Shown: piece after piece, positions 21,472-62,927 of the stretch
How positions within the stretch are numbered: position 1 is the stretch's first letter
Layout: the number at the start of each line of letters is the position of its first letter
NCBI RefSeq assembly: GCF_032444005.1
Contig: NC_091288.1
Coordinates: 207,576,001 to 207,640,000 of the forward strand
Reading direction: 5' to 3'
Source of the DNA: Ranitomeya imitator
Taxonomy: Eukaryota
DNA length: 64,000 bases
Translations under genes and position numbers: made by a program
Notes under the pieces: generated by a model
Database searches by the model: none
The model's input: the letters and a program-made list of their open reading frames with translations, nothing else
What the model was told of the DNA's origin: nothing

Positions 21472-24400
21472 ATGAAGGAAAGTAGCAGCCGGCATCCCGT
21501 CAATGTTGAAGCCATTGGATTAATGCAGCATGGCAATGATAAGGTGAGACCCTATTATACACAGTATTATCGTCCAGCGGCTGAGGCGGGCAATAGAAGT
21601 GTAATATACAAAACTAAGAGTCACATTTAATACATTTATTTTATATTTGTAATACATTATTAATAATGCTAGAAAGTTGCTTATATTGCAATTCCTTTTT
21701 ATATTTAGGTTATTTATATGACTTATTTAACATAACGTAGCCATAGAAATAAATATTTTCTGGTGTCAACAGGAATTTTTTTTCCCGGATTTTTCAGGAA
21801 TTTTTTGGGGTTATAGAACCGCGAAATATCAGCATGATAAAAAGTTTAATAATAAGTTATTTAGCTCTATTTCTCGCCTGCCTTCTGCTCTTTCAGACAT
21901 ACATGTTTTCAGTTTCATGGTCCGACCACAACAAGGTCCTGATCTACCGAACATTTCAAGAATTTAAGAAATTCCAGGTAAGGTGCATATAAGGATAAGA
22001 ATTCAAAAACATTTTTTTTAAGGAAGGAAATTGTAAAAAAAAAATAATGATAATGTAGCAATTTTTTAATAATTTGCTGCGTGGTATAAAATGCGTGCAA
22101 ATTTTATTCTGTAGATCGTTACCAAATGTATTAACTTTTATGAACAATTGAAAAATTTGTTATTCTGAAAGCTGTGTCTTTTATGGTTGCTTTTTTATTG
22201 TTTTAATTTAGGAGAAAAAAATTGGTTTTGTTTTTCTTTTTTGATCTTTTTTTTATTATTATTTTTTTTACCATTTTATGGTATTTTTCTTCAGACTACC
22301 TCTTTTTTGATCTTTTTGAACATTTTATTGCGTTTTTTACAAAAATGTTTATTTTGTTTTTTTTTAAATTTGGTAGTCCACGTAGGGGACTTAATTGTGC
22401 AACGGCTTCAGTAAAACACTGCAATCCTTACATATTTCAGTGTATTATGCCTGTCGGCTAAAATTAACGTATTCAAATATGAAAATTCAGTTTAAGATTA
22501 GAGGAAAAGGCATACTGCTACTGAATGATAAAGCATGTTGTCTTTTGTACTTAGAGGGATCTTAAGAAAAAATTCCCATTAGAAGCTGGAGCCCTAAATA
22601 AGAGAGAAAGAACACTGCCCAAACTGCAAGGTGAGAAGAAAAATGATACATTATTGCATTTATTTTATGATAATATATAAAGAGGTCAATAACATGGAGA
22701 TCAATAATAAAAGTGTAGCTGCTTGCAGTCACCAACAGAGGGAGCTCATGAACTTACGTTATACTGCGTAGGCATTGACTGTATGATAATACAGTCTGCA
22801 GTAAGCTCCTGAGCTCCCCCTAGTGGTGACTGCAGGCAGACAAAATATATCATGCAGCTTTATGACAGTGCATGGGATTCGGAGCTTATGTCCGTCTCAC
22901 CGATTAAGGGCTACCGAGCACAATCAGCATTGCTGTTATACGAGCTTTTACTGAAACAAGAATTGTGTAATTTATGGCTCCTTGACAAATTTAGAGTTGA
23001 TGAAAATGGCACACAGAAAAAAAAAGTAAAAATAGTTAAAAAATGCTAATAATCGTTCCTAAAAGAAGTTACAGAAATCCATGTGCATCATATTAGGCTT
23101 AACGGGGATTTCCACTTTTGGAAAAATCAGATTAGAAAATAGTAAGAAATTGGAATTTTAAAATTAAAGTGACGGCAAAAAAATTTGAAGAACCTGTCAT
23201 TATCAAATGTCACCACTAGGTGGCAGCATGGTTCTAAAAATGGAATCTCTTTCTAGAGTTGATTTTTTTTTCTTCTTTTCAGATGCTCCTAGGATTGTGA
23301 CGAAGAGGAACGTCTCCAAGAGGTTCTTAGAAAGACTACGGCTCCTAGAGGCCTATTCACATTCTTTGCTGAAGATGGATGCCAAGATTTCACACAGCGA
23401 TATTGTGGTTCAGTTTTTCACGCTACAACACTGCGACCTGAAGCCGTCATTCCCTGAAGACAGGTGAAGATCTGCCCAGACTATATAATGTTCAGATTAT
23501 GAAGAGTCCTCCATAGCTAACATTATTATAAAGATATGGTGGCCTGGATTGGATTCAACCCCTTAGATGCCGCAATCATTTGTGATCACGGCAGCTAACC
23601 GGTTAGACAGAGGGAGGAGCCTCCTTGTTGAAGGAGGAGCCTTCCTGCTGAAGGAGGAGCTTCCCTGCTGAAGAAGGAGCCTTCCTGCTGAAGGAGGAGC
23701 TTCCCTGCTGAAGGAGGAGCTTCCCTGTTGAAGAAGGAGCCTTCCTGCTGAAGAAGGAGCCTTCCTGCTGAAGGAGGAGCTTCCCTGCTGAAGGAGGAGC
23801 TTCCCTGCTGAAGGAGGAGCCTTCCTGCTGAAGGAGGAGCTTCCCTGCTGAAGGAGGAGCCTTCCTGCTGAAGGAGGAGCTTCCCTGCTGAAGGAGGAGC
23901 CTTCCTGCTGAAGGAGGAGCTTCCCTGCTGAAGGAGGAGCTTTCCTGCAGAAGGAGGAGCTTCCCTGCGGAAGAAGGAGCCTTCCTGCTGAAGGAGGAGC
24001 TTCCCTGCTGAAGGAGGAGCCTTCCTGCTGAAGGAGGAGCTTCCCTGCTGAAGGAGGAGCCTTCCTGCTGAAGGAGGAGCTTCCCTGTGGAAGGAGGAGC
24101 TTCCCTGCGGAAGAAGGTGCCATCTTGCTGAAGGAGGAGCCATCCTGCTGAAGGAGGAGCCATCCTGCTGAAGGAGGAGCTTCCCTGCTGAAGGAGGAGC
24201 CTTCCTGCTGAAGGAGGAGCTTCCCTGCTGAAGGAGGAGCCTTCCTGCTGAAGGAGGAGCTTCCCTGCGGAAGGAGGAGCTTCCCTGCGGAAGAAGGAGC
24301 CATCTTGCTGAAGGAGGAGCCATCCTGCTGAAGGAGGAGCTTCCCTGCTGAAGGAGGAGCTTCCCTGCTGAAGGAGGAGCTTCCCTGCTGAAGGAGGAGC

Positions 24401-27400
24401 CTTCCTGCTGAAGGAGGAGCTTCCCTGCTGAAGGAGGAGCTTCCCTGCTGAAGGAGGAGCCTTCCTGCTGAAGGAGGAGCTTCCCTGCGGAAGGAGGAGC
24501 TTCCCTGCGGAAGAAGGAGCCATCTTGCTGAAGGAGGAGCCATCCTGCTGAAGGAGGAGCCATCCTGCTGAAGGAGGAGCTTCCCTGCTGAAGGAGGAGC
24601 CTTCCTGCTGAAGGAGGAGCTTCCCTGCTGAAGGAGCCTTCCTGCTGAAGGAGGAGCTTCCCTGCTGAAGGAGGAGCCTTCCTGCTGAAGGAGGAGCTTC
24701 CCTGCTGAAGGAGGAGCTTTCCTGCAGAAGGAGGAGCTTCCCTGCGGAAGGAGGAGCCTTCCTGCTGAAGGAGGAGCTTCCCTGCTGAAGGAGGAGCCTT
24801 CCTGCTGAAGGAGGAGCTTCCCTGCTGAAGGAGGAGCCTTCCTGCTGAAGGAGGAGCTTCCCTGTGGAAGGAGGAGCTTCCCTGCGGAAGAAGGTGCCAT
24901 CTTGCTGAAGGAGGAGCCATCCTGCTGAAGGAGGAGCCATCCTGCTGAAGGAGGAGCTTCCCTGCTGAAGGAGGAGCCTTCCTGCTGAAGGAAGAGCTTC
25001 CCTGCTGAAGGAGGAGCTTCCCTGCTGAAGGAGGAGCCTTCCTGCTGAAGAAGGAGCTTCCCTGCGGAAGGAGGAGCTTCCCTGCGGAAGAAGGAGCCAT
25101 CTTGCTGAAGGAGGAGCCATCCTGCTGAAGGAGGAGCTTCCCTGCTGAAGGAGGAGCCTTCCCCCTGGAGGAGGAGCTTCCCTGCTGAAGGAGGAGCCTT
25201 CCTGCTGAAGGAGGAGCCTTCCCCCTGGAGGAGGAGCCTTCCTGCTGAAGGAGGAGCTTCCCTCCTGAAGGAGGAGCCCCCGCTTTTTATGAAAAAAAAA
25301 ATACATTGAAAAAAGAAATAAATAAAATTCTTTTTTTATCTTTTAAAATCCCCCAAGGTCCATAATAACTGTGTCCCTGAAGGGGAGGGGTGCTGTCAAT
25401 ATGCCATAAGTATGTTAAGTGGGAACACCCCATTAAGAGGGTAATAAGCCTGAAGATCCATCTCTTTAATAAGCCTCATATCTGCATGTCAGGATCCAGA
25501 ATCTTGGACTGAGTCTTAGCATTCCATCTTTTTTTTTCTTTCAGCCTCGTCATAATGCCGTCAGAGAAAAAAGAGGAGACTCTGATCGTCTCATCTCACG
25601 CCCCCGATATCTCCGCTCCTCTCGTATGCTCCAAATACATGTGTATGGCCGACTATGAGACGGCGGATCTGAGGGACCGGGCATTCAGAGTGAAGCAATA
25701 TGAATTCCTTGATGTTCTGCTTAAGGAGAACACTGGTACGTGAGCAGCTGCTGTGTTTTGCTGAAATAGCGCCACTTGTGTTAACAGGCGGTGACTGGTA
25801 TTGTAGCTCAGTTCAAATTCAACAATGTGGGCAGGAGTGGTACTAATGTATTCTGATCTCATACACCCCCTGTATGCCAAATTATTTGTGATTGTGTGTC
25901 TCCGCCTAGTGGTGATGGAAGTGAACTGCAAATATGTAAATTATCACTTATAATCGCAGGATGGTGGCTGGTGGAGAACGAAGAGCGACAATTAGCCTGG
26001 TTTCCAGCACCTTATTTGCAAGATTACAGAAAAACAGAAGAATTTGACATTGTCAAAGAATGCCAAGAAGAAGGTATGATGAATCTTACGCTCATTTGTT
26101 TAGTCCTCAACTCAAATTATCATATTATTGTCAGAAATTCATATTCAAAATGATCTATCCTATTCTGCTGTAGCCAAATGGCACTAATCTTTTCATGCTA
26201 TCTCAACAGCCACCACTAGGGGGAGCACACTGCATACTGAATTATTATTGAGTTTTATGAATAAACTGTATGCAGTGTGCTCCCTCTGGTGGTGACTGCA
26301 GGTATAGTGAATGTTATTTATTAAGTCTGCAGGAGATTTTGTGCTCTGTGTCCTAACACAACAATTCTGACCACTTTAAATATATTTTCAGAGTCAGTTA
26401 AGATATTTGAAAAAAATAAATAAAATAAAGCATTTAAGGGTGTATAATAAGAGTGATCTGGGTCCTGACTTTCTCTGACATTGATTTTCTCCATTCTTGA
26501 ATAGGTATCTTGTGCGTGGTGATAAAAGGCTATCAGGCTCAGAATTTTGATGAACTTTCTGTGGGGATCGGCGTCGTGGTGGAAGTCTTGAGAAAATCAG
26601 ATTCTGGCTGGTGGCTCATCAGGTGAGGATTTTGGGGCGTTTTAGGGTGTTTAACTTCACTTTTGTTTTGGTTTAATGGTGAAATAGCGATGGAGGAGGA
26701 TCTGTTACATACTAGATATAGTCACCAGTGGCAGGTGGAAAGGATTAAGGGGTTATCCCATAAGCAACATATATCATCGGATAGGTCATAGATGTCTGAT
26801 CGATGGACATCCGACCACCGATCGTAAGAGATGTCCCAAAGTCTCACTGTGATTGGAGCAGGACTGAGCACGTGCGACCACTGCTCTATTCATCGCTATA
26901 GAAGCGGTGGTCGCACATGCTCAGTAACATCTCATTCATTGAGACCCCCCATTCTCTCAATCAGCCGGAGCCTCAGCAATCACATATTTTTCATATGGAT
27001 AGATCATAAATATTTTTTATATTCTATACTCCTTAAGAAAGCTACCATTTTTATTTTTTGCACTTTTGTTTTCTTTTATTTTTCCATTCGCATAGTCATA
27101 TGAACACTTGTTTTTTTTACGGAACAAGCTATAGTTTTAAATGACACCATTCACATTACCATATAAAGATGTGAAAAGTAGGGACAAACAATTACAGGTG
27201 TGGTAAAATAAAAAAACAACAACAATTCAGCCATTGTTTTGGGGTTTTGTGTGTGCAGTAAAAATCCTAGGATTCTTCAGGTCAGTACAATTAGATATCA
27301 TTTTTTTAATATGTTAATAACGTTAGATTTGGTTTGTGTTGCAATTTTTGAGATCCGTAAAAAATAAATATTTTTCTATTGGAGGGCTTGGTTTTTTTTT

Positions 27401-29704
27401 TACGATGTAAGATGTCGTTTCTTTTGGTTTTGGGTTACATATGACATTTTGATCAATTTGTATTTATTTTTTTGTTGCAAGTGCATTTCAATTCTGCCGC
27501 TTCCAAGTATTTTCCTTTACTTTGTTTACTGGAGGGGTTAAATATTTCTATATTTTGATAGGTTGGACTTTTACGGACGTGGTAATTTCCAATGCATTTT
27601 TTTAATTTCTTTAATTTTGGAGTAGATTTTGTTTACTTTTTTTTTTTTAAATTCGACTACTTTTTAAATAGTTTTTTTTTCCAGTGAATTTGAACCTGCG
27701 ATCTTTTTGACCACTTGCAATATATACTTTAATGCTCCAATATTGCAATATATAAGAAGTTCAATGATTTTGAATGAAGCCCAGCCACAAGTTGGACTTC
27801 ATGGGAGTACAAAGATGTCTTCAGTAGGCCCCGGCTGCCATTGTAACCCATCGTCACCCTGCTATTGAATGGGGGCGTATTGCATTCATGGGCATTTAAA
27901 TGTGAGATTCTGTATGGTTAAACAGCAGTGATCAGAGCTCGCTCCAATCTTGGCTGTTTGAGACAGTTTCTGGCTGTATAACACAGCTGGCACCTGCTCT
28001 GTATCCAGTGAGTTCAGCTCCTGAGCCTCTCCATACACATGCACCAAACCTGTGATGTGGGTATATCAAAGGTCGTTAAGGGGGTAAGAGATAATTGGCT
28101 GTGGGAGAACATCTTCCTATATCATAGTCATAGTCAGTTCAGGTCTTTTCACCAGAGCAGCCTATGAGAGTGTCGAAACTGTGAACCCAAACAATACCCT
28201 GCCTAACAGATGAGCGTGGTGGTTCGTTTCCTCTACAGTCATAGCGGGAGTGCTGACCTGGCCAGTGGTTCCCTCTACAGTCATAGCGGGAGTGCTGACC
28301 TGGCCAGTGGTCCGTTTCCTCTACAGTCATAGCGGGAGTGCTGACCTGGCCAGTGGTTCCCTCTACAGTCATAGCGGGAGTGCTGACCTGGCCAGTGGTT
28401 CGTTTCTTCTACAGTCATAGCGGGAGTGCTGACCTGGCCAGTGGTTCGTTTCCTCTACAGTCATAGCGGGAGTGCTGACCTGGCCAGTGGTTCCCTCTAC
28501 AGTCATAGCAGGAGTGCTGACCTGGCCAGTGGTTCGTTTCTTCTACAGTCATAGTGGGAGTGCTGACCTGGCCAGTGGTTCGTTTCTTCTACAGTCATAG
28601 CGGGAGTGCTGACCTGGCCAGTGGTTCGTTTCTTCTACAGTCATAGTGGGAGTGCTGACCTGGCCAGTGGTTTGTTTCCTCTACAGTCATAGTGGGAGTG
28701 CTGACCTGGCCAGTGGTTCGTTTCTTCTACAGTCATAGTGGGAGTGCTGACCTGGCCAGTGGTTCGTTTCCTCTACAGTCATAGCGGGAGTGCTGACCTG
28801 GCCAGTGGTTCGTTTCCTCTACAGTCATAGCGGGGGTGCTTACCTGGCCAGTTGTTCGTTTCCTCTACAGTCATAGTGGGGCTGCTGACCTGGCCAGTGG
28901 TTCATTTCCTCTACAGTCATAGCGGGGCTGCTGACCTGGCCAGTGGTTCGTTTCCTCTACAGTCATAGCGGGAGTGCTGACCTGGCCAGTGGTTCGTTTC
29001 CTCTACAGTCATAGCGGGAGTGCTGACCTGGCCAGAAGTAACTCTCCATGTGATTCTATCATCAAAACATGACTAGGAGGAACATCTGTCCCAGTCACTA
29101 CAATGAAATCAAGCTACAATACCAGACACCACCCATGTAAAGGTGTGGTGCAGTTTAAAGAAGATTTTCTAGACCTATCCAAGTTATAAAATTGTACATT
29201 TATGTCCACAGATACAACAAAAGAACCGGCTACATCCCATCCCTTTACCTAAAGCCGTACTCCAACCCGTGTGAAAGGTTCCATCATATCCTCGGCAGAG
29301 AGCGCCTTGGTTCCACACCCAATCTGCAGGAAGATAGGTGGTTTGGAGACACGTATTCGTTTCTATCTTTCCGACCATCGATAGACGAGCAGAGACGAAG
29401 CGATAGAGGAAGGTTGCAGTCATTGGGGAACACGTCACTGGGGTCTGAAGCCAGATCTGACCTGGACTCGGATCTAGAGAGCGTGTCAGGGAGTAGACGT
29501 AGCTCCTCCAATAGTGGCGTCTCTTTCCTGAGCACCTCCGATATCTCACTGTCCACGACCACATCAGTGTATGGCCTGCCCCAAATCCCCACAAGACCCA
29601 AACCAGAGGAGATCCTACAGAAGTGCAGCACAGTCACCAAGAATAAAGTGCGGAGGTCACTAGTGAGTATGGGGTCAACAGATGTCAACATGATCCAGCT
29701 TTAG
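21472..29704 (+). CDS. NOXO1: NADPH oxidase organizer 1-like, paralog A (441 aa). Exons 21472-21543, 21897-21977, 22555-22630, 23283-23463, 25545-25735, 25960-26073, 26505-26622, 29212-29704
   Basis: All introns GT-AG with phases 0,0,1,2,1,1,2 giving an open 1326-nt CDS. PX (FSVSWSD...IYRTF; KKKFPLEAG), SH3a ([20 protein letters not shown], near-identical to the recalled human NOXO1 [20 protein letters not shown]), SH3b ([19 protein letters not shown]) and C-terminal PQIPTRP...KCSTVTK. Confidence 0.92.
23611..25277. repeat. 20-bp minisatellite in intron 4 of NOXO1-A, about 83 units
   Basis: Units GAAGGAGGAGCTTCCCTGCT and GAAGGAGGAGCCTTCCTGCT. Confidence 0.98.
28225..29035. repeat. 46-bp minisatellite (with 41-bp variants) in intron 7 of NOXO1-A, about 18 copies
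   Basis: Unit CTACAGTCATAGCGGGAGTGCTGACCTGGCCAGTGGTTCGTTTCCT. Confidence 0.97.
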
Positions 29705-36590: not shown

Positions 36591-36873
36591 AAGAAGAGGA
36601 GCTGGATATTGGACTGAACATCTCCCTTCTTTTCCTCATTTGGGTTTCTTCATCCATTATGATACAGGTGTCCTCTTTTACTATGTGTTTGATAAGGGTG
36701 AGATATTTGCTCTGGCACTGGTGAATAAAAGATCAAAAGACAAAAGGGATGGTGCATTTTGGCTTCCTGCAATTTCGGTTTCACAGGAGACCAGCCTTCC
36801 ACCCCCTCCTTTGTAGTCTATGAATTCCAGGGCTACAGAGGTGAAAAGCTCAGTGTCTCTGCAGATGAGAAAT

Positions 36874-39800
36874 ATGAGCCGGTATCCCGTAGAAGCCAAG
36901 GCTATAGGACTGGTGCAGCATGAGAAACAGAAGGTAAGCTTCCATCGCTGAGATTTCTCATAATATTCCCCCTTGAGTTTAGGAAGAAAACGAAACACAA
37001 TGCGGCAAGGCTAATCAGATAAACCACTGTAACTTTTATATAAGAAGGGTCCTCCTAAGATTAGATGATCACAGAGAATCCCATTAATTGGACCCAGTGA
37101 TAAGCTGTGGGGAACCCCGGTAGCAGGTGTTTCATTTTTCTGCAGTGCCCCCGCAGTGTAAATGTAGTATTACACAGTTGTGCACAATGCCTGGATGCGC
37201 TGGATCCTCCAGAACACAGATGAAAATGATGGGTAAAGCCGCATTCAGACATCGGTGATTTTTATCTTATGTAAAAAAAAAAATGATCTTATATAAAAAT
37301 ATGGACAATTGTTCACTTGTGTTTTAAATCCGAAATCAGATTTCATCATCAATGATTTTCCGGTATAAAAAATAAATGACAAAGCTTCTATACATTACAC
37401 GTTAATCACGGATATTGTACACTGATGCATGTGCTGTCATTGTCACGGCCCCATAGACATGTATGGGTAATTTCGATCCTTGATTTGGATCACAAATGAA
37501 CATATCTCTTTTTTTTGCACACACACGATCTGCCAAAAATCCCATAAAGCCCCATAGACTATAATGGGTATATATTTTACTGTGGAAAAAAATTGAGGTC
37601 TGAGTAGGGCCTAAAGTTTGATATTGTCATTTATGCTATTCTTTGTGTTCTTGCAGCTCTTCATGTTCTCCATCCTCTGGTCGGACTCTAATAATATTCT
37701 CGTGTACAGGACGTATGATGTCTTCAAGGAGCTTGCAGTAAGGTCTTTTCGTTTTAATTTAGTTCTAAATACAGGAGACTCAAACATATGAGTGAAGTTA
37801 TAGATAGGAAGCAGCTATAAATCCTCCAATAATGACCATCATGGAATCCCCATAATAAGTACAGAGCCCCCAAAATAACAGCCACAGACTTCCAATAATA
37901 ACAACCGCAGTGCCCCATAATGATAAGTACTGAGTCCATAACAACCGCAGTGCCCCAAAATAATAAGCACAGTGCCCAATAATATGAAGTACGAAGTCCC
38001 ATTATGACAGTCCTAAATCCACGGTTTACTAAGGGTATGTGCACACGTTGCATTTTTTATGTGTTTTTGTTAAGGGAAAAATAACAGCGTTTAACAGTAG
38101 GACTACTGGTATAGTCATTTTGACTACTTACTTGCAGTAGTTCTAGTCAGGGTTCACGAGGGAATGATAAATGCAGGGACAAGAGACTTTTTGTTTCTAC
38201 ATAGACCAGAGAAAGGAGAAGAATGAACTGGGCAGAAAGGCAAAATGTGCAGTTGTAAGTACACTGCTATATAATATGATTGCAATATATTAAGAGGATA
38301 AAAACTTGATGGGAGAGCTCCTTTAAGGAACTACTGTCGAGGGAGGATCTGAAGTGACCCTTCACGGTTGACTTAGTCATTTCCAAATTGATGCACAGAG
38401 CATTGGCGGCAACTGAAAATGACCAGACGGAGACGTGTGTCTCTGTTTGGGGGAATCAAGCGGATCTCTGACCCCCGTTTATTGTGTCGCACTTTTCATA
38501 ATCTTAGAAGTTATACTTCAACCAATCAGCATAAGAACACGCTCACAGTTCTTAACCTATAAGAATGCAGGAACAGCCTGTACATCAAGTCCTAGTGTTA
38601 ACAGTACCAGCAAAGTGAATGAGATTTCGGAATAACTTGCTGATGCTTTTTATCTTTTCCTTGCAGATTTGAAGCAGATTTGCTGCATGTCATCTCTTTA
38701 ATATTTATGCAACATTTTGCACCCATTAAAATGTGTAGAGGAAAAAAAATGTATGAAAGACGCACGTATATGACGCAGAATTTTCCCTGCCAACACTCCC
38801 TAATTTGTGGCAGTAAAACTACTGCAAATACTGAATGTGTGAACATGCCCTAATAATAAGCAGGGTCCCCATAGTAAGAGGTTATGGCAGCCACATTGCC
38901 TTCACATGAGTAATAAAAACAGCACCAGACTGTCATCAATAACAGTAATCTTATCTCAGAAGACGACTCTTGCAGCCCCCAGTAATTACTGACTCTAGTA
39001 AGTATAACCCTCATCATCTACTTTGATCATCTAGAAATCACTTACCAGGAAGTTTCCGCTGGAGGCCGGCGTGGTGAACAAATCAGAGAGAATTCTTCCC
39101 ATACTCAGGGGTAAGTGAGGCATCGACTCCATGCAGACGACATCTGAGACGTAAGTGATCCGTGAAATTACATAGGACTGCGATGAATGGGACAATGCTA
39201 ACATCACATTTAGCTGTTTATTTTTGGTGATTTTTTTGCCTGTTTTTCATTTGCGCCTTATTCTCCTTTTACAATTTTTTTTCTTTTTTTAAGTCTGTTT
39301 TATGTGTGCTCTCCTGTTGTTGTTGTTGTTGTTACTGGTTTTTTTTAGGTTCATCATAGTCAAGAAAGCTTTGGGTTTGCAGAATTTTATAGCCGATTCA
39401 TCATTGCAACTTTTTAAAAAGTCACAACATTTTTATACAAATGTCATCCAGCCTTATTCGCTGGAGTGAATTTATCTTCATCTGACATTTTTTGCAACGT
39501 TTCGGCGAAACATACGACATTTTGGGCTTATATAATCCCAAAACCGGTTAAAGACAAAAATAAATCGTTTTTTTTTTTTCATGAATCATGGACCTTTTGG
39601 AAGAATTTGGGGAGAAAAAAACCTTAACAAATAATCTAAGAGAAAATAAAAATAAATATGACTTCTTTAACCCACTCTCGCCCCCCCACAACTGATCTTA
39701 TTATACAGCTCTGTGTACTTACAATTGCTCATTTTGCCTTTCTACCCAGTTAATTTTTCTCTTTTCCATTAGGTGTATGATATCACGTGATTAAAATCTG

Positions 39801-42800
39801 ACTAGATGCATTCTTCTAAGCTCTGTTTAGAATTGACCAATTTTCCCATCATGAGTCATTGCAAAAGTCACTGCAGGGGGAGGAGCTGAGCAGCTGTGTC
39901 AGGAGTTGAAGAGGGGAATGATAAATGCAGGGACAAGAGACGTTCTGTTTCTACATAGACCAGAGAAAGGAGAAGAATGAACTGGGCAGAAAGGCAAAAT
40001 GTGCAGTTGTAAGTACACTGCTATATAATATGATTGCAATATATTAAGAGAATAAAAACTTGATGGGAGAGCTCCTTTAAGGAACTACTGTCGAGGGAGG
40101 ATCTGAAGTGACCCTTCACGGTTAACTTAGTCATTTCCAAATTGATGCACAGAGCATTGGCGGCAACTGAAAATGACCAGACGGAGACGTGTGTCTCTGT
40201 TTGGGGGGATCGAGCAGATCTCTGACCCCCGTTTATTGTGTCGCACTTTTCATAATCTTAGAAGTTATACTTCAACCAATCAACATAAGAACACGCTCAC
40301 AGTTCTTTACCTATAAGAATGCAGGAATAGCCTGTACATCAAGGTCCCGTAGAGCAATACACCCTCAGTGTCATATCTTGTTTAGGCTGGAATAATCAAG
40401 GGCTCATAACAACTATGAACTTTAACCTAGTAACAAAATTTATTTCAAAACAGCAAGATGGAGTCAAAAAGCACAAAATGAAACCTGCTTTAATTTTTCT
40501 TAGTTTAACCCTTCACACTACAAGTCCTTGCATAATGCTCAAATAAATACACACTACATTGTCGATGTCTGTCTCTAACAGCAGCAAGCTGAGCTGAGCT
40601 CTGTGCGCTGCTGTTAACCATTTATGTGATGCTGTCAATCTCGGACAGCGGCATTTAAATGGATGAGATTCCAGTACACTCGCACCCCAGCTCGCATCAC
40701 CCCGTACCTGCGAATCAAATGCAGAACACCGATAAATTAGCATTGGACCCTTTGAACTGTTGAAGGCCACCATTGCTGACCGCATAGTTTTCCTGTTTTC
40801 ATAAAAGAATTTCACAATATACTTTAATATTGATATATTGCAGTAAATAATGATCAGGCGGTCGCTAGTTCAAGTCCCCAAAGGGTAGTATAAAAAAAAA
40901 AAAAAATTAAATATATGTATTTAAAAAATGTAAAAATTTGAATCATCCGTCCCTCCTTTTTTTCATTAGAAATTAAAAAAAATTTTTTTTTAAATCACTG
41001 AGTCTGTAAACATCCGGTACATCAACATAAAAAAATTAATGAAACCATATGGAAAACTTCAACAAGAGAAAAGAAAATCAAAACACCAGAATTGCCCTAA
41101 ACATATACAATACAGAGCAACCTCCAATGTACACCAAAGTGATATCAAGGAAAACGTCAGCTCGCAGTGCAAAAAACAAGCCCTCACACAGCTCAGTAGA
41201 CAGGAAAATAAAAAAAACATTATGGGGGTCTCTGAAAATGGCAATATGAACCAAAATTTATTATTATTTTTGTTTAAACTTCTGATTTTTTTTTTTATTA
41301 AATAAAAACAATCTATACAATTTTGGTATCACCGTAATCATACAGACCTGGAGAATAGGGGGGAAAATTTAAAAAATCCTTCTCGTGAAAGTGTTAAAGA
41401 ACTCGTTTGCCCCTGAGCAGATACCAAATGAATGAGTAAAGAACTTCATTTTCCTTTCAGGTTAGTGGAACAATGGGAAACCTACTTTTTGTTATTTAAC
41501 ATGGAGTTCGTATAACAATGAACATTTTCTTCTAACTATTATGTAAATGTTAGATTTTCCTTTTACAAGGAACAGGAAATATTTTAAAGTCACTGTTTTA
41601 TATGCAGAATTTACTTATAAGAGCCAATCTACTGATAAGATCTTTGAACAAGACCTTACGATGCAGTTTATTGCTCACATTAGAAATATATAGACAGGTC
41701 TGTCTGTTCATCCCGCAACTGATAAGCTAAAGTTATAAAGCGTGTGACATTTTATGGGAAGTGGTTTTTATATAGAGTCACACCCTTCTATAGAAACAAA
41801 ATAAATTCTGGAACTTTTTAGAACAATCAAAAGATAAGCACTAAGTAAGTGACACTCTGAGGATGTCAGTACGGTTGAGGTTCCGGAATATTGAGCCACC
41901 AGCACTTCAAGGACTGGAATAACAACAGAACATCGTAATATGGGATCTAGAATCAGCCATGGGTTATGGAAATATTCTGTGGATCAGGGGCTACACTACA
42001 CGCTATAACGTAGAGTTGTACAACAATGGTACACTAATACTTAATCTCTTTATAATAATCTCTTTATTTATATAGAGCTAACATATTCTGCAGCGCTTTT
42101 CACTTTTGCACACATTATCATCACTGGCCCCGATGGAGCTCACAATCTAAATTCCCTATCAGTATGTCTTTGGAATGTGGGAGGAAACTGGAGAACCTGG
42201 AGGAAACTCACGCAAACACGGGGAAAACATACAAACTCCTTGCAGGGGGTCCTGTGTTTGGACATAGGACCCCAGCGCTGCAGTGCTAACCACGGAGCCA
42301 CCATTCTTCTAATATGTTCAGTACTGGCATTCAAATACATAGGGTTAGTCACAATTACTGTTGGGATTGGTCAACAATGGACCAATACTTGAGGGTGGTC
42401 CACATTGGAACGCTAATATATGGAACTAGTAAACTTTGACACATTATTATTTGAGTTCTGTCAAAATGAGCTTTCTGATATTTGGGGATGGTCAACATTG
42501 ACACTTCAGTACTGGAGATTGGTCAACATTGGCACACTAATACTTGGAATTAGTCAACATTTGCATGCCAATATTCAGGTTGGTCAACATTAGACCAAAA
42601 CTTGGGGATGGTCAACATTGACGCTCCAATACTTGAGGTTGGTTAACTTTGGCACACTAATATTTGGAATTAGTCACAATTGGTGCACCAATATTTGAGA
42701 TTGGTCAACATTGGCACAATAATACTTGGAACTGGTCAAACTTGGCCCTCCAATACTTGGGGATGCTTAACAATCAATTTCCAATACTTGAAATTGGGCA

Positions 42801-45800
42801 ACATTGGCATTCCAATACATGTGGATTGTTCACATTGGAAGTCCAATACTTTAGTTTAGTCAATGTTGGCACACTAACACTCGACATTAGTCATTAATGT
42901 CTGACTAATACTTGACAATGGTCAATATTTATACTCCAATACTTGGAGATAGTCAGCACCAGCTCACTATTTCTTGAGGTTGGTCATATCTGCACACTAA
43001 TACTTGGAACTGGTCAAAATGTACACACTAAATCTTAGAATTGGCCAACAATGACATTCCTATTCTTGTACTTGTCTACATTGTAACAACAATTCTTGAG
43101 GTTGGTCAATATCAACACACTATTACTTGATGTTGGTTAACACTGGCATATTAAAATTTGAAATTGGTCAACATTGGCACTCTATTACTTGAGGTTGGTT
43201 GACATTAGCACACTATTACTTGGAATTAGTTAACACTAACACACTTGCTTTTTAAGCTGTAGTTGCATCAGGTCTCTGGCCTCTAAAAGTTGTATTTCTT
43301 TAAAAGTAATATGAAAGCATTTAGCTTTGACAGAGTAATGCATAAATTGCAACCTTGGTGCACCTGCCTTACAACCATTGTGACTCAGGTTACCCACCTG
43401 ACCAATTCCAGTCACATGGGCAGTCACTGTATTGCATAATGTCTTTTTTTACTCTTACAGATGCCCCATTGTTGTTCCGCAGTAAATTTACTAATCGATA
43501 CTTGGAGAGACTCCGACTTTTAGAAATTTATTCCAAGGAACTTCTTCAAATTGACTCCAAGATCTCCCAGTGTGAAGAAGTTATTGAATTTTTCACTCCT
43601 AAGAAGCAGGACCTCACTCCATCCTTTCCTGAAAACAGGTCTGTATAGTAGATGTTCTATCTAGAGATCATGGACAGACACATCACCATCATCAACAATC
43701 ATGGAAACATCCTTGAATTTCATCTTTAGTTTTTATTAGCATGAAAAGCACCTAAATCGTGATTGTCTTCTAATTTCAGTGTCGTGATAATGCCATCAGA
43801 CAATGACCAAAATCAAAAAGAGGTAACATGTCCACCCAGGTCAACACAACTCAGCACCACACAGCCAATTGTATCTGAATCCTACATCTGTATTGATAAC
43901 TTTGAGACCAAAGATACCAAGAACAGACCTTTCAAAGTCCAGAAGAATCAATGCATTGATGTCCTGATAAGAGATCCTTGTGGTAGGTTCTTGATTTGAT
44001 TTGTGATAGGAAAAGAGTCACCACCCAGTAAATCTAAAAACTAGATATCTGTTTCTTTCTTCTAGGCTGGTGGTTGGTTGAGAATGAAGACAAACAAGTG
44101 TCCTGGTTTCCAGCTCCTTTTCTGAAAAAGTCTGATTCTTTAGATGATACTGATTCAAAGAGGACATCATTCAGGAAAGGTTGGTGAAGAGGACAACCTT
44201 CATAGCTACAACTGGGGCAATTCCATCAAAGTATTCTGAAAAATCATACAGAAATGTACAACATTGGAGGCTTTTGACCTTTGTTCCCTCTAAAGGCTCC
44301 AAATACAAATTAGACTAACGTTCTCCAATCTGCCGATAGCTCACTGTCAGATGACGTTGGTGGAGAGAAGGATCTGGGATGTCTGGCAGCATCTTTCAAA
44401 GATAGCACAGGAGCGTTGAGCCGAGACGAATGTTCCTGTATTTGGGAATCAGGAGAGTTAGCAGCTGGCTGAACGATTAGTCAAACCATCATTTAGCCAA
44501 CAGCTATCTATTATGTATGGGGAGCTTGTGCATTTCTGGCTATGGTTAAGGTCCTCATGTACATTAGACTAATGTCAACTGAGCCCACTGATATCAAGGG
44601 GTTTGGCCGAGTGTCTAATGAAGGCTACAGTCAACTGATGGTCTGGAGAGATATCGATTGTGCGTGTCCGATTTCAGACTGCCAGTCAAATTGTTCTACG
44701 TGAGATAAACCGCCTGGCTGACGTGTTTGCTGGTGGTTTTCTCAGAGAGAACAAAGTAACACACAGCCAAGTGCTCCTGTGTATGGGAATGTCAGCTGAT
44801 ATGGCTGAACGATCAGCCGAAACATAGTTCGACCAACAGCCATCTAATGATATCTCTAAGCCAGGTGATACAGAACTTATAGAAATATTAACTTAAATCG
44901 CCCTTGCAATTTGCCATACAGCAGAAAGATTCTCCAGGCCCCTCAGTATCCATGTAATTATTATTGCAGAGCATCCTGATCTAGAACAGTGACACTGGTG
45001 GCAATTCATCAAAGCTTTTTCACTTGATTGCTGGCCAAAAAAAAAAGGCATAGAAAAGTCGCATTGTTTTGTGCAACCGTGACTTTTGACTCACAGCAAT
45101 CTCACAACAGCGTCGACAAAGTTGGTGGAGCTGGAGCGTAACGACCGCAGCTCGTAAACGACCATAACGACCGCAGCTCGTAACGACCGCAGCTCGTAAA
45201 CGACCGCAGCATAACGACCGCAGCTCGTAAAATTCATGACGAGTGGCGGCTTTCACTATGCGACCTATCATACTCCAGCAGGAGATGGAGTAAGATTTCT
45301 GGTGAGGTGCACATAGTGTCGCACGCCGCTACACGGCCCGCCTGATTGATTAAGAAGTGTAACATTCTTCGTGAATCAGGGACATCTGCTCCAAAACGCC
45401 CCTCATGGAGAGAATCACTGAACTGAACGATTCTGTATGCATCCCTGGTGGTCCAGGGAAGTGAATAGGTTAATTTCTGTATTTAATGTGGTCTAAAGCA
45501 GTAGAAAGGTTATTTTCTCAGTCTTGGTCAGCGAAAGGTTTGTTTTCAAGCTCTTGGCTCTCTTGAGTGAAGAGACTTTTGTGTTCTATCTATGTTTTCC
45601 TAAAAAGTCTCATCCTCCCTGAAGCCTCGTTAATAGAAATCCTTTTTTCTTTCAGTAATGCAGATGATCAGATTTCCTTTTTTCCAGGAACATATTACTA
45701 CGCAGAGAAAGGCTACGAAGCTCAGAAAACAGATGAAATGTCCCTTCCGGTTGGCGTTGTGGTAGAAGTGATTGAGAAATCTGAAATTGGATGGTGGCTT

Positions 45801-46979
45801 ATTTGGTAAGAGGGTTACGGTATTTTTTTTTTTTCTTTGCGTCTAATGAGAAGTGGAGAGTAAAGTGCCACTTTCTTGCCAAGTGAGCACAGTCCTGTAG
45901 ATTGGATCTAAATGGTATTAGCCCCATTCAAGTAAATGCCAGACACAACCTATGGAGTAGAGTGGAGAAAGTAGCCATATTTTTCCAATCCCATAAGCCC
46001 TAGTCTTCCAGTCTTGACCATGAGATGTGCCTCGAAATAACTTAAATAAGGATGAGTTATAATATCTGACAAGCTGGCGGACAGATAGATGCTAAAGCAG
46101 TTGGCATGGGGCTAAATATGGGACTAGAATCCAATCTTCATCTAGAAAAATTCTCATGGCGGCATTGAAAGCATCCCAAAATTGCTGCTTCGGTAAATTC
46201 CTGCGGTCAGGGCTGGTAGAGAATCTGCAATATGGGTAGAAAAGCAGTGTTCAGGGCAGGTGACAATCAAAAAGCACAGAAAAGAAGGAGCTCTTGGAAC
46301 CAAGTAAATGGAGAAGAAGTCCGATTGTCAGTCTGAATTTACATCATATACTATGCGCTCATAATAGTCTCCTTTTTCTTTTAGTTACAATGGAAGATTT
46401 GGGTATGCCCCATCCATGTGCCTCAAGCCTTATCAAAACCCACACCAGAAACTACAAGTGACCCTACATAATAATGTGTCAGGGTCTTCTCCCAATCTCG
46501 CTGAGGTCGTGAGCAGTCTAGATACAGGCTCCAACCCCCAACATATTAATAATGAGGATCGGGGCCGTAAGGGTAAACTAGTAAGGATGCAATCAATATC
46601 ACTAAACGACCTCGAAAATTTATCAGATCCTTCTGACCAGTCATTTGTCACGTCAAGAAGAAAAAGAAATGTATATGCGGATTGGGAGGTTCAAGACGCC
46701 AAGGAAGGTGCATCTTCTTCTTTCACAGAGAAGCTAAGATCCATCCAGACAGTGGTCTCCATTCATGACTGGAAGGATAATATGGAGATGGGCAACTATA
46801 TGGAGGAAAAACAGCGGAAAGATTCTGGATTTGTGGAACATCTGTCACCAAAGACATCAATCTCTTTAGATGATGCTGACACCACAGCCCCACCTGTGCC
46901 AGAAAGACCTACAATGCAGGAGATCCAGTCTAGATGTACCAGCACAACCAAGAAAGCTGCTCTACAGGGGAGTGGATGA
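36874..46979 (+). CDS. NOXO1: NADPH oxidase organizer 1-like, paralog B (474 aa; alternative in-frame ATG at 36865). Exons 36874-36933, 37657-37737, 39035-39110, 43461-43638, 43780-43982, 44066-44179, 45688-45805, 46385-46979
   Basis: GT-AG introns with the same phases as paralog A and an open 1425-nt [20 protein letters not shown]...[49 protein letters not shown] and PPVPERP...RCTSTTK. Confidence 0.92.
38161..38589 (+). repeat. About 430-bp local direct duplication, copy 1
   Basis: Matches 39915-40343 at offset 1754 with scattered substitutions. Confidence 0.9.
39915..40343 (+). repeat. About 430-bp local direct duplication, copy 2
   Basis: Matches 38161-38589. Confidence 0.9.
42050..42303 (-). 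mobile_element. Degenerate V-SINE copy
   Basis: Alignable by eye with 16135-16424; B box eroded. Confidence 0.75.
42330..43240. repeat. Degenerate minisatellite (about 30-40 bp units) in intron 3 of NOXO1-B
   Basis: Recurring TTGGTCAACATTGGCACACTAATACTTG(G/A) variants. Confidence 0.8.
45136..45230. repeat. Short tandem repeat of AACGACCGCAGCTCGT, about 5 copies
   Basis: Direct reading. Confidence 0.8.
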
Positions 46980-55925: not shown

Positions 55926-55963
55926 ATCCGCAGCTGTATAACATACTAAATTCTGGCATTAAT

Positions 55964-58882: not shown

Positions 58883-60493
58883 CAGGTCCTTCTCAAAAAA
58901 TTAGCATATAGTGTTAAATTTCATTATTTACCATAATGTAATGATTACAATTAAACTTTCATATATTATAGATTCATTATCCACCAACTGAAATTTGTCA
59001 GGTCTTTTATTGTTTTAATACTGATGATTTTGGCATACAACTCCTGATAACCCAAAAAACCTGTCTCAATAAATTAGCATATTTCACCCATCCAATCAAA
59101 TAAAAGTGTTTTTTAATAACAAACAAAAAAACCATCAAATAATAATGTTCAGTTATGCACTCAATACTTGGTCGGGAATCCTTTGGCAGAAATGACTGCT
59201 TCAATGCGGCGTGGCATGGAGGCAATCAGCCTGTGACACTGCTGAGATGTTATGGAGGCCCAGGATGCTTCAATAGCGGCCTTAAGCTCATCCACAGTGT
59301 TGGGTCTTGCGTCTCTCAACTTTCTCTTCACAATATCCCACAGATTCTCTATGGGGTTCAGGTCAGGAGAGTTGGCAGGCAATTGAGCACAGTAATACCA
59401 TGGTCAGTAAACCATTTACCAGTGGTTTTGGCACTGTGAGCAGGTGCCAGGTCGTGCTGAAAAATGAAATCTTCATCTCCATAAAGCATTTCAGCCGATG
59501 GAAGCATGAAGTGCTCCAAAATCTCCTGATAGCTAGCTGCATTGACCCTGCCCTTGATGAAACACAGTGGACCAACACCAGCAGCTGACATGGCACCCCA
59601 CACCATCACTGACTGTGGGTACTTGACACTGGACTTCAGGCATTTTGGCATTTCCTTCTCCCCAGTCTTCCTCCAGACTCTGGCACCTTGATTTCCGAAT
59701 GACATGCAAAATTTGCTTTCATCAGAAAAAAGTACTTGGGACCACTTAGCAACAGTCCAGTGCTGCTTCTCTGTAGCCCAGGTCAGGCGCCTCTGCCGCT
59801 GTTTATGGTTCAAAAGTGGCTTTACCTGGGGAATGCGGCACCTGTAGCCCATTTCCTGCACACGCCTGTGCACGGTGGCTCTGGATGTTTCCACACCAGA
59901 CTCAGTCCACTGCTTCCTCAGGTTCCCCAAGGTCTGGAATCGGTCCTTCTCCACAATCTTCCTCAGGGTCCGGTCTCCTCTTCTCGTTGTACAGCGTTTT
60001 CTGCCACATTGTTTCCTTCCAACAGACTTACCATTGAGGTGCCTTGATACAGCACTCTGGGAACAGCCTATTTGTTGAGAAATTTCTTTCTGGGTCTTAC
60101 CCTCTTGCTTGAGGGTGTCAATGATGGCCTTCTTGACATCTGTCAGGTCGCTAGTCTTACCCATGATGGGGGTTTTGAGTAATGAACCAGGCAGGGAGTT
60201 TATAAAAGCCTCAGGTATCTTTTGCATGTGTTTAGAGTTAATTAGTTGATTCAGAAGATTAGGGTAATAGGTCGTTTAGAGAACCTTTTCTTGATATGCT
60301 AATTTATTGAGACAGGTTTTTTGGGTTATCAGGAGTTGTATGCCAAAATCATCAGTATTAAAACAATAAAAGACCTGACAAATTTCAGTTGGTGGATAAT
60401 GAATCTATAATATATGAAAGTTTAATTGTAATCATTACATTATGGTAAATAATGAAATTTAACACTATATGCTAATTTTTTTAGAAGGACCTG
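58883..60493 (-). mobile_element. Full-length Tc1-like (DD34E) transposon, 1611 bp
   Basis: TA TSD on both sides; near-perfect 200-bp TIRs (58883-59082, 60294-60493), each with AAATTAGCATAT at both ends (IR/DR layout). Confidence 0.95.
59161..60164 (-). pseudogene. Tc1 transposase with a single 1-bp frameshift near 59382
   Basis: MGKTSDL..., VLFSDES, FQHDLAP, then VLN(W)PANSPDLNPIENLW...AKGFPTKY. Restoring one base gives D-34-E spacing. Confidence 0.92.
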
Positions 60494-61157
60494 TATATGA
60501 GCATAGCTTTCTTAAACCAGATTCATATAATATGACATCAGGGCTAGAATAAGTTGGACAAGTGCGATCAGATAAAAAATTCAGATTGCACTCAGACCAA
60601 TGCTATTCCATGAGGCAGTGCAGATTGGCATATTTGTCTCAGCCATATTCAGTATGCTGCGACTTTGCTTCGAAATCGGACAGTGCCAAAAAATAAAAAA
60701 ATGGCATACGGACCATCAGTACGGCATCTGCTGTTTACAGACAAGTTACAATTCTGTAAAATAGGAAACTGCAAATTGTCCAGTAAAAGTGAGTAAAAAG
60801 CAGATTGAGACGATTTTCCTCACTTGTCATCCGTATACATTCTCCTGGATGAGAATGTGACCTATTATTTATACGTAAGTGTGAACGTACCCTTAGGGCG
60901 AGTTTCAAAGTCTCCCCCTGTTCTTTCGTCAGACCAGGCAGTTTTTACATTGTTTTCTCTGCGCTTTAAGAAAACACATGATGAGGAAAACAAGGAATTA
61001 CCCAACTACCTGAATGTTGAGTCCTTTACTTCCTTCAAGGCTTCATGTTGCTCTTGAGTCATTAATTTCTGATTGGTGGAATAATTATAGCCCGGCACTG
61101 CAGACTATTATAAAGAGCGGCTACCACTGTCAATCAGAACCTCGGCTTGTTTGCAAG

Positions 61158-62927
61158 ATGCCTCAGCAGACCACGGCCGGGCGCCATCCGTTGGAAGTCA
61201 AAGCGGTCGGCGTTCTTCGGAATGGGAAAGGAAAGGTAGCGTATTTCAACCATCTGTTCTTCTCACAGCAGTGCACTCTAGCAATGACAATAACAAACAG
61301 CGCCACACTGGTCCTCAGGTTGTGTCTGGTATTGCACATCAACGCTATTAAAGTGGATGGTGCTGAGCTGTAATACCACACATAACCTGATGGGGTACTG
61401 GTTTTGGAAGAACACAGCCATGTTTTTAATAACCCTGAGCTTGTCTGCACTGATGGCAGTACCCTTGCTATGCCCCTGCCTATGAGGATTGATGATGGCC
61501 GCCACCTTTATAATCAGAGTATAATGGAGAAAGCATGAGAGGATAATATTTTAAAGAGGAAATATGATTTGGATATTTTTGTTTATAGCCCAAGTTGGAA
61601 TGATAGATCCAGAGATGCGATTTTTCTGATTGGGGTATTTGGTAGCGGCTGAGGCGTACTTATAGTTGGTGCATGGGAGGTAGTTGTACTCTGACACTGG
61701 GTCTTAGGGGGCACAAAAGGTCCATTTGTGCTATATGAGAAGACCAATGCTATTAAACATCTGTGATCATGAAGATTTTGGATTGGGCCCATCAGCTTGA
61801 ACTTACAACGCCAGGTGTCTGGAAGGACTCTTTCCAGCTGATGACCCAACTTCTTCATAGGGTTTCACTTTTTCGTTCTTAGGAATAATGTATTTTTCTT
61901 GATTTCTAATTATTTTTATCCTCATTAACATTGTTTTAGCTTAAATAGTTAGGTCTTGAAAACTCAAGGCTACTTTTTAAACGACTACTCTGTTTTGTCT
62001 ACTTACTAAAAGAGTCCTTCAACGAGCCTCTACCGGGACCCCAAAAGTTGTAATCTATGTGAAAGTTTAATTTTCCTACAGCGCCACCACAGGGAAAATT
62101 AGGCATTGCACAGTGTCTACGTAAATCTATTGATTGTCTGTGTAATGTAGGACCGGAGAGGTCCTCCAGAGCGAGAGATAGTCTTTAGATCGCTCTCCAC
62201 TTTGGCCAAGGAAGAAGTATCATAAACAATGGACCCCAGTATATGAAATCAATGCGGTGTATGAAAACGGGTTTCCAAAGTAAACAACCCCTTTAAATAT
62301 GGTTGATCTGTAAAGAGAAAGGCTATAAACCATGATGATTGCCTTCTTGATGCTTGAGGTCGCCTACAGGATGCATGGCTCGGCTATAGGAACCTACGCA
62401 TTTTGGATAAAAGTTGGTTGAACCTACCGATTTCGCAGGACCGACCAATCATCTGTTGTGTATGGGGTCCTTCCGACTCCCCTTCAACAGATGATACCAG
62501 GAAAGATAAGAATCATGGAGATTTCAGGGGAGGAGTCTGACCGCAGCTCTCTTCCCTCTGTCCATTCAAGAACATGAAATCGATCTTACAGAAGGGGATG
62601 GAGGACTTTCGGGGTCCTACAGCTTCTGGGCCTCAATACCAAATCATGTTGTGACCCATGTGCGGTGCACCCCCTAAAGTTACACCCCTCGTAACAATGT
62701 GATCCTTTAACCATTTGAGCCTAACAAATACACATGGCATGCTATGTATAGATTTAGCTTCTTGCTCCAGTCCTTGATGGAACTTGTAGTCCCCCCCTTA
62801 ACAAAAATGTGAATTTTAGGTAATTTGTTTTCTTTAATTTTAACAGAGCAATATATTTTCAATTCTGTGGTCCGACCACAACGACATAGTCATCTACCGG
62901 ACGTTTGAAGACTTCAAAAAGATGCAG
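61158..62927 (+). CDS. NOXO1: NADPH oxidase organizer 1-like, paralog C, partial: exon 1 61158-61235, exon 2 62847-62927; continues beyond the window
   Basis: MPQQTTAGRHPLEVKAVGVLRNGKGK|SNIFSILWSDHNDIVIYRTFEDFKKMQ. Exon 2 is 81 nt with phase 0/0 as in A and B, and 16/27 identical to A. Confidence 0.82.

Follow-up and report, generated by a model that had tools for sequence, protein, structure and literature searches.

A tandem trio of NOXO1 paralogs at the Ranitomeya imitator NOXO1 locus, probably retained since the frog stem

NOXO1, an adaptor that activates the NADPH oxidases producing ROS, usually counts as a single-copy organizer that serves NOX1 and NOX3. The human protein is roughly 370-376 aa long; the gene order taken as conserved is NOXO1-TBL3-RPS2. 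Mammalian NOXO1 consists of a PX domain, two SH3 domains and a C-terminal proline-rich tail, in that order, and has no detectable p47phox-type autoinhibitory region. The overall domain order is shared by p47phox (NCF1), while Tks4 and Tks5 (SH3PXD2B and SH3PXD2A) have four or five SH3 domains after the PX domain, within about 900-1100 aa. Zebrafish and other teleosts, with noxo1a and noxo1b, are another case of non-amniote vertebrates with more than one NOXO1, under names that are established in databases and expression papers. For frogs, the sole evolutionary survey that we found gave Xenopus tropicalis one NOXO1 (Kawahara and Lambeth, 2007; PMC2121648). NOX3 was found in neither X. tropicalis nor fish (PMC1940245).

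We analysed a 64,000-nucleotide stretch of the genome of R. imitator, the mimic poison frog (contig NC_091288.1, positions 207,576,001 to 207,640,000; hereafter, the window), in which a first-pass annotation had proposed at least three same-strand NOXO1 genes in tandem. This proposal was borne out: three genes, termed A, B and C, lie head-to-tail in that order on the + strand with canonical splice sites. Gene A, the A-type paralog (21472..29704, +), has eight exons (21472-21543, 21897-21977, 22555-22630, 23283-23463, 25545-25735, 25960-26073, 26505-26622 and 29212-29704, stop included) that encode 441 aa in an open frame with AG/GT at all junctions, and the model is 100% identical to XP_069590705.1 (NADPH oxidase organizer 1-like, R. 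imitator). Upstream of it lies a putative 5' non-coding exon (20398..20512, +), spliced to the acceptor at 21444/21445; the GenBank model CAJ0915286.1 joins 20398-20511 to 21445, with the donor G/GTAAGT and the acceptor CAG/ seen at the sequence level. Gene B, the B-type paralog (36820..46979, +), likewise has eight exons (36820, or ATG 36865, to 36933, then 37657-37737, 39035-39110, 43461-43638, 43780-43982, 44066-44179, 45688-45805 and 46385-46979, stop included), an open frame and AG/GT junctions. Its product is 492 aa long with the start at 36820 and 477 aa with the start at the conserved Met at 36865. Residues 16-492 are 100% identical to XP_069590704.1, the initial 15-18 residues of the long model show no conservation across the B clade, and the B-type mRNA of another frog begins at the third Met of the model (window position 36874). 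Gene C, the C-type paralog (61158..63801, +; RefSeq name NOXO1), is present with exons 1-3 only (61158-61235, 62847-62927 and 63726-63801), joined at AG/GT junctions, and the remainder lies past the end of the window; the 78 aa encoded in the window match the first residues of the intact 490-aa XP_069590709.1 with 100% identity, and on the R. imitator chromosome the entire gene covers ~5.8 kb. The bounds given to the array in the first-pass annotation, 21472 and 62927, correspond to the ATG of A and the end of C exon 2. Across the whole window, no further NOXO1-like fragments were found on either strand, and a fourth copy or pseudogene in the window was ruled out by the absence of extra matches. 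Database searches were run with single exons or with database proteins identical to the gene models, and the joined spliced models were used for alignment, trees and dN/dS.

The finer comparisons made from the letters alone held as well. The three genes share exon phases, each has an exon 2 of 81 nt, and recounting the PX exon 2 identities from the peptides gave exactly the values proposed (A/B 13/27, A/C 16/27 and B/C 14/27). No introns can be aligned, as claimed: when the three gene regions were compared by blastn, the only segments to align were parts of exons 2, 3 and 6 (75-82% identity). The frames of A and B, described as intact, are uninterrupted over 441 and 492 (or 477) aa. The full proteins show ~43-44% mutual identity, which makes them as distant from one another as each is from alligator NOXO1, and their identity to a marsupial NOXO1 is ~38-39%. 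Between A and B, dS is saturated. The copies diverge in the RT-loop of the first SH3 domain (in A) and in their linkers, which vary in both length and sequence. At 441-490 aa, the frog proteins are longer than human NOXO1 because their SH3-to-tail linker is longer.

All three proteins have the order of domains found in mammalian NOXO1. Pfam PX, SH3 and p47_phox_C matches were found on exons and on full proteins, with the run for gene A made on a stored protein differing by 2 residues. Each R. imitator protein carries the PX arginine in a YRT[FY] motif, two GWWL motifs containing the SH3 tryptophans and a C-terminal PxxPxRP followed by EI..C, and the PX arginine, SH3 tryptophan and PxxPxRP motifs are conserved within each frog clade. 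The PxxPxRP and helix motif (Pfam p47_phox_C) is shared with p47phox, which is also the top match among structures over the full length (8WEJ chain C, E about 1e-33 to 1e-37). Like mammalian NOXO1, however, the frog sequences differ from p47phox in that, at the level of sequence, we detected no p47phox-type autoinhibitory region in A, B or C. Alignments of A and B to the p47phox chains that bear this region (1NG2/1UEC) end where the second SH3 domain ends. Such a region was considered in the C-type, where one p47phox alignment extends beyond the second SH3 domain, and was rejected because a PDB search with the C-type linker alone, at a threshold as loose as E = 10, returned nothing. Clade A conserves a basic-serine motif (about R.RS.S) that is weaker in clade B and also occurs in the C-type (RrKSRS) and in sauropsid NOXO1.

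Neither the genes nor their arrangement are peculiar to R. imitator. RefSeq already lists all three in this species as NOXO1 or NOXO1-like, and A-, B- and C-type genes are also present in about 20 other frogs; the array, whose novelty the first-pass annotation had left undecided, is thus not new as to annotation. In Hymenochirus, A and B share a strand, with A ~10 kb upstream, and three consecutive locus tags are found both there (GDO86_017565/66/67) and in Engystomops (GDO81_016620/21/22). On the R. imitator chromosome, an 841-aa multi-WD40 gene is convergent to C and is located ~0.4 kb beyond it; human NOXO1 adjoins TBL3, and we take this WD40 gene to be a candidate TBL3. The frog locus is probably the NOXO1 locus and not that of NCF1. 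In the searchable literature, we found no published description of the frog NOXO1 trio. The array is genuine, ancient and still maintained, although automated annotation had already recorded it. It represents no new kind of system, and its genes are already listed by annotation pipelines.

In phylogenetic trees, the frog sequences fall into clades A, B and C, each with 21-26 sequences and 100/100 support. Each clade spans Bombina, Discoglossus, pipids, pelobatoids and neobatrachians (clade A also includes Ascaphus), and the branching order within each resembles the frog species tree. In a tree rooted on shark NOXO1 only, the three clades are nested in tetrapod NOXO1 with 100/100 support, while the NOXO1 genes of shark, ray-finned fish (sturgeon, bowfin), lungfish and coelacanth branch outside it. 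Since fish NOXO1 genes fall outside tetrapod NOXO1 in our trees, the frog A/B/C split is an event separate from the origin of the teleost pair. Mammals were left out of this careful tree; when they are included, their long branch joins clade A with a support of 82, and we judged mammalian NOXO1 as sister to clade A to be long-branch attraction. Frog A, B and C group together at 95/94, apart from the salamander paralogs (96/86) and the caecilian ones (100/99), and the triplication was therefore probably on the frog stem. Its most likely placement, as judged from the trees, is after the salamander split and before the diversification of living frogs. On frog timetrees, the frog-stem interval falls very roughly 200-290 million years ago.

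An older origin would place the duplications before frogs, in the ancestor of living amphibians or earlier, would derive the salamander, caecilian and perhaps coelacanth pairs from these events too, and would attribute the order-specific clustering to gene conversion between tandem copies or to tree error; we consider this unlikely, though it has evidence of its own. Salamanders, caecilians and coelacanth each carry two NOXO1 genes, on one chromosome where this is known, and the salamander and caecilian pairs, annotated as NOXO1 or NOXO1-like, are also tandem or chromosomally linked and share the architecture of the frog copies. Backbone internodes are short, the one underlying the timing being 0.07, and the branching order of A, B and C is weakly supported (44/42). 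The relationship of frogs, salamanders and caecilians is mis-resolved as well: the protein tree joins salamanders with caecilians and the expected frog plus salamander grouping is marginally rejected (AU p = 0.028), which points to some systematic tree error. Against these points stand the monophyly of the frog genes noted above and the lack of any pairing of the salamander and caecilian genes, which are of two types versus three in frogs and form order-specific clades, with A, B or C. In AU tests, all 12 topologies in which a salamander paralog joined just one of the frog clades were rejected (p <= 0.014, delta lnL 24-47); these were fixed, hand-regrafted topologies under LG+F+G4, a procedure more liberal than a constrained search. 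The paralogs also lack the intron or synonymous-site similarity that would indicate recent conversion. Gene conversion acting early on the tandem copies would, however, mimic lineage-specific duplication.

A different objection is that the copies belong to different families, one of them being, for example, NCF1/p47phox or Tks4/5-like. Inconsistent RefSeq names lend this some colour, since a Hyperolius C-type protein bears the name 'putative neutrophil cytosol factor 1C' and a Discoglossus B-type one 'SH3 and PX domain-containing protein 2B-like', but we regard it as barely tenable. In addition to the position of all three inside tetrapod NOXO1, the solved structure that their PX domains match best is that of human NOXO1 (2L73; 99, 113 and 100 bits for the three PX domains), at about double the scores against the p47phox PX domain alone (1KQ6/1GD5; 46-54 bits, with A at 54, B at 49 and the C-type below the 1e-10 listing cut-off). 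The NCF1 combination of a polybasic, serine-rich autoinhibitory region with a p47phox-type PX domain was found in no copy. Tks chains match the frog proteins only via single SH3 domains (E about 1e-8 to 1e-11), and 441-490 aa with only two SH3 domains is not the layout of Tks4 or Tks5. All three copies are thus assigned to NOXO1, and none to NCF1 or Tks, by tree position, PX scores and SH3 matches, and the concern that they might represent different known families is answered. We find it very improbable, too, that decay or silencing of at least one copy leaves R. imitator with a single working organizer. Gene C is visible in the window for 78 codons only, but two assemblies annotate it as intact with a 490-aa product, and A and B retain intact eight-exon frames with canonical splice sites and, like C, all functional motifs. 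On the lineages leading to R. imitator A and B, dN/dS is ~0.25 (0.23 for A, versus a bullfrog mRNA; 0.27 for B, versus the mRNA of another frog). Full uninterrupted coding sequences of A-, B- and C-types are found on Logan contigs of 1.6-4 kb from other frogs, which shows that each type is transcribed and spliced there, and the reservation that only one copy might be expressed is contradicted in those species. The description of the array as an old, retained expansion is upheld by the three frog-wide clades, the dN/dS of A and B, the intact motifs and the spliced mRNAs of other frogs.

We therefore favour, with good confidence, the reading that the window holds the R. imitator NOXO1 locus, with three organizer paralogs that arose by tandem duplication on the frog stem and have been retained under purifying selection. 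Two tandem duplications would have produced the three copies, which all major frog lineages sampled have kept. By analogy with mammalian NOXO1 and p47phox, the PX domain with its lipid-binding arginine would serve in membrane targeting, the two SH3 domains with their ligand-binding tryptophans would bind the proline-rich tail of p22phox, and the C-terminal PxxPxRP and helix motif would bind the SH3 domain of NOXA1 or p67phox. Since the full organizer layout is present in each protein, each copy should be capable of linking an activator subunit to a NOX1-type, and possibly a NOX2-type, oxidase. Subfunctionalisation by tissue, stage or partner would be the likeliest cause of retention, with a presumed division of labour among the copies.

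Mammalian NOXO1 is one gene with two clients, including NOX3, whereas frogs have three genes and are reported to be without NOX3. The tuning of ROS output by tissue or stage suggested in the first-pass annotation is hypothetical, and a NOX3/inner-ear role is doubtful, since NOX3 was not found in X. tropicalis or fish (PMC1940245). More tentatively, three stem-evolved organizers kept for ~200 million years or more in frogs, together with independent duplications in salamanders and caecilians and one copy in amniotes, might reflect an amphibian-specific need for several organizer isoforms, with A, B and C having distinct partners or regulation. If so, candidate needs include ROS defence in skin and mucosa, otoconia formation without NOX3 and thyroid-hormone-driven remodelling. 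In frogs, the Xenopus models among them, the presumed ancestral locus carries three long-diverged organizers, and noxo1 knockdown or measurement in regeneration, gut, skin or inner ear must therefore specify the paralog. The trio also offers a natural experiment relating organizer sequence to NOX output. Possible hints of distinct partners or regulation are the divergent RT-loop in the first SH3 domain of A and the differing linkers.

Repeats are abundant across the 64-kb window, which contains no N runs. When candidate exon peptides were compared to the window with tblastn, the only matches were three paralogous exon sets on the plus strand, and full-length NOXO1 proteins likewise matched nothing but these 19 exons. 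Gene models were built by chaining database proteins by exact match onto the three reading frames, and each junction was inspected. Gene A (21472-29704) and gene B (36820-46979) have eight exons each, encoding 441 aa and 492 aa (477 aa if translation starts at the later ATG, 36865, rather than at the first), respectively; gene C is represented by exons 1-3 (61158-61235, 62847-62927 and 63726-63801) and is truncated by the window end. Every internal junction of the three genes is AG/GT, and the lengths of exons 2 and 3 (81 and 76 nt) are equal in all three, as are those of exons 6 and 7 (114 and 118 nt) in A and B. At 100% identity, the A model matches XP_069590705.1, the B model matches XP_069590704.1 when begun at Met16, and the part of C inside the window (78 residues) matches the beginning of XP_069590709.1; all three proteins are coded on one 226.8-Mb R. 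imitator chromosome record, so the window is R. imitator sequence and its three genes are already annotated in RefSeq. As the first-pass annotation had described, A, B and C lie on the same strand with common exon phases, and A and B are intact; C is likewise intact outside the window, as the 490-aa RefSeq protein.

The start of gene B (36820-36874) is modeled in more than one way. RefSeq XP_069599781.1, from a 108.6-kb record, begins 15 codons before XP_069590704.1. The B clade shows no conservation of these additional residues, and in another frog a B-type mRNA starts at what is the third Met of the longer version (position 36874). Compared with the window, the 108.6-kb record has two residue differences in A and four in B, and so is probably the other haplotype.

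We asked to which family these proteins belong. A search of 1.84 billion representative proteins with a profile of PX exon 4 from A and B returned 81 matches, and every match whose name was checked was vertebrate NOXO1 or NOXO1-like. PX, SH3 and p47phox C-terminal motifs were detected using Pfam. The PX domains score 99-113 bits against the human NOXO1 PX domain (2L73) and 46-54 bits against the p47phox PX domain alone, Tks proteins with solved structures match through single SH3 domains only, and when A and B are aligned to p47phox chains spanning the autoinhibitory region, the match ends at the second SH3 domain. Judged by sequence, A, B and C are therefore assigned to NOXO1 and to neither NCF1 nor Tks. 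An alignment of the C type to p47phox that extends past the second SH3 domain was discounted as having no support of its own, since the C-type linker searched alone returned nothing even at E = 10. RefSeq names A and B 'NADPH oxidase organizer 1-like' and C 'NADPH oxidase organizer 1'. Elsewhere, public annotation has naming and model problems (database proteins P0020, P0019, P0293 and P0299): the name 'putative neutrophil cytosol factor 1C' is given to a C-type protein of Hyperolius and 'SH3 and PX domain-containing protein 2B-like' to a B-type protein of Discoglossus, and two adjacent paralogs are fused in a 993-aa model of Ranitomeya variabilis and a 917-aa model of Anomaloglossus.

The three genes had been proposed to be anciently diverged. 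Whole-protein identity is 43-44% among A, B and C and 44-47% between each of them and alligator NOXO1, such that their mutual divergence is about that of each from alligator. The exon 2 identities were reproduced exactly on recounting the peptides (A/B 13/27, A/C 16/27, B/C 14/27), and the reported lack of alignable introns also held, with blastn among the three gene regions aligning nothing beyond portions of exons 2, 3 and 6 (75-82% identity).

To date the triplication, a quick tree of 98 proteins, mammals included, was compared with a careful tree of 57 proteins without mammals (IQ-TREE, LG+C20+F+G4 PMSF, ultrafast bootstrap / SH-aLRT), and the two were concordant. A, B and C each belong to a different clade of frog proteins. 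These three clades are each supported at 100/100, and each contains Bombina, Discoglossus, pipids, pelobatoids and neobatrachians in a branching that nearly follows the frog species tree; Ascaphus is present in the A type, and all three types occur in at least 15 species among the proteins fetched. The clade stem branches measure 0.41-0.52 substitutions per site in the careful tree. Together, the frog clades form one group (95/94), within which the branching order of A, B and C has support of only 44/42. The two salamander types group together (96/86), as do the two caecilian types (100/99). In the quick tree the very long mammalian NOXO1 branch joins clade A at a support of 82, a grouping that we judged to be an artefact of its length.

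Fourteen fixed topologies, regrafted rather than obtained by constrained maximum likelihood, were then compared with the AU test (LG+F+G4). All 12 that join one or both salamander paralogs to a single frog clade were rejected (p-AU <= 0.014, delta lnL 24-47). The expected grouping of frogs with salamanders was also marginally rejected (p = 0.028), indicating that the backbone carries some systematic error. The best reading of these sequences is that two tandem duplications occurred on the frog stem; older duplications whose signal has been blurred by gene conversion are a live but weaker explanation. Two NOXO1 genes each were also observed in salamanders (P0107/P0283 versus P0116/P0134), caecilians (P0111/P0015 versus P0160/P0252) and coelacanth (P0022 versus P0021). 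Because these pairs cluster within their own lineages, they suggest that the locus was repeatedly duplicated independently, or converted, in non-amniote sarcopterygians.

The first-pass annotation further proposed that the expansion had been retained, which agrees with the three fully supported frog clades and with purifying selection on A and B. By the Nei-Gojobori method, dN/dS is 0.23 when A is compared with an mRNA contig from bullfrog (dS 1.2, near saturation) and 0.27 when B is compared with one from another frog (dS 0.52); between A and B, dS is saturated. Uninterrupted full coding sequences were found on Logan contigs of other frogs, of 4,050 nt for the A type (SRR4044081, from bullfrog, in whose genome the gene spans 22 kb), 1,566 nt for the B type (SRR32314943) and 2,075 nt for the C type (SRR5810437). 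Carrying full coding sequences on such short contigs, these must be spliced transcripts.

Motifs were compared in clade consensus sequences and in the three R. imitator proteins. The PX core is conserved, including an arginine that aligns with the RR pair of human NOXO1, which we take to be Arg40, counting on the human sequence; Arg40 of human NOXO1 is required for lipid binding. The GWW motifs of both SH3 domains are conserved, as is a C-terminal PxxPxRP followed by an EI..C..T(K/R) helix motif, a tail that in p47phox binds the SH3 domain of the activator. The RT-loop of the first SH3 domain reads ETvDL.nrpF in clade A and differs from the ten-residue version of B, C and sauropsids, and the linker is shorter in clade A. 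A short S-T-P-N-L linker motif after the second SH3 domain is present in A, B and sauropsids and degenerate in C, and a basic-serine linker motif (approximately R.RS.S) is kept in clade A and sauropsid NOXO1, with RrKSRS as its version in C and a weaker form in B.

If the frog proteins work as mammalian NOXO1 and p47phox do, the PX domain of each paralog would anchor it to membrane phosphoinositides, its tandem SH3 domains would dock on the p22phox tail, and its C-terminal tail would recruit NOXA1 or p67phox, assembling an active NOX1-type oxidase. The three copies, long-term purifying selection and long stem branches fit with subfunctionalisation or specialisation after duplication. A suggested role with NOX3 in the inner ear is weakened by the reported absence of NOX3 from X. 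tropicalis and fish (PMC1940245). NOXO1, its paralogs not told apart, is among the T3-upregulated gill genes of one axolotl study (PMC10364608), a faint hint of thyroid-hormone control.

The array is also found in other frogs. A-type, B-type and C-type genes carry consecutive locus tags in Hymenochirus (GDO86_017565/66/67 for C, B and A) and Engystomops (GDO81_016620/21/22 in the same order); in Hymenochirus, ~10 kb separates the end of the A-type gene from the B-type gene downstream of it, both on one strand, and another assembly record of R. imitator likewise has A ahead of B. On the R. imitator chromosome, C spans ~5.8 kb and is followed after ~0.4 kb by a convergent gene encoding an 841-aa multi-WD40 protein. 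Human NOXO1 adjoins TBL3 (PMC2121648), and this WD40 gene, a candidate TBL3, occupies the corresponding place beside frog C.

In the open-access papers and bioRxiv preprints searched, we found no description of multiple amphibian NOXO1 genes; a 2007 survey gives one NOXO1 for X. tropicalis (PMC2121648), and noxo1a and noxo1b are gene names in common use for teleosts. As frog NOXO1 genes from ~20-25 species are already present under inconsistent names in RefSeq, UniProt and Ensembl-derived sets, we rate A, B and C as new paralog subfamilies inside a well-known family: a tidy and real finding, unsurprising in kind, that should be moderately interesting to those working on NOX enzymes or Xenopus.

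Repeats and mobile elements surround the genes. Window positions 1-21000 showed no host exon, GFER-like or otherwise, and gene A is preceded by four large tandem arrays, at 2073-3376 (86 bp x 15), 11025-13093 (20 bp x 103), 14840-15710 (158 bp x 5) and 17138-19341 (394 bp x 6). Identical ORF-bearing blocks at 4734-5289 and 9481-10036, ~4.7 kb apart, surround a 1121-aa ORF (5736-9101) whose tail is a purine-rich repeat (32/66-bp repeat at 8024-8997), an arrangement that resembles an LTR element between its pair of LTRs. Much of gene A intron 4 is a minisatellite with a 20-bp period (23613-25277, ~83 copies, 87% matches) that produces spurious minus-strand ORFs of 445-567 aa; intron 7 of A contains a 46-bp x 18 tandem repeat (28219-29035), and a degenerate 31/62-bp repeat (42382-43244) in intron 3 of B directly precedes exon 4. 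Inverted duplicated ORFs at 54643-56527 (minus strand, 464 aa; plus strand, identical 187-aa tail) match GIY-YIG weakly and are consistent with a Penelope-like inverted insertion. Between B and C, an open 289-aa Tc1/mariner-type transposase ORF lies on the minus strand (59358-60227; Pfam HTH_Tnp_Tc3_2 2.4e-15, DDE_3 weak).
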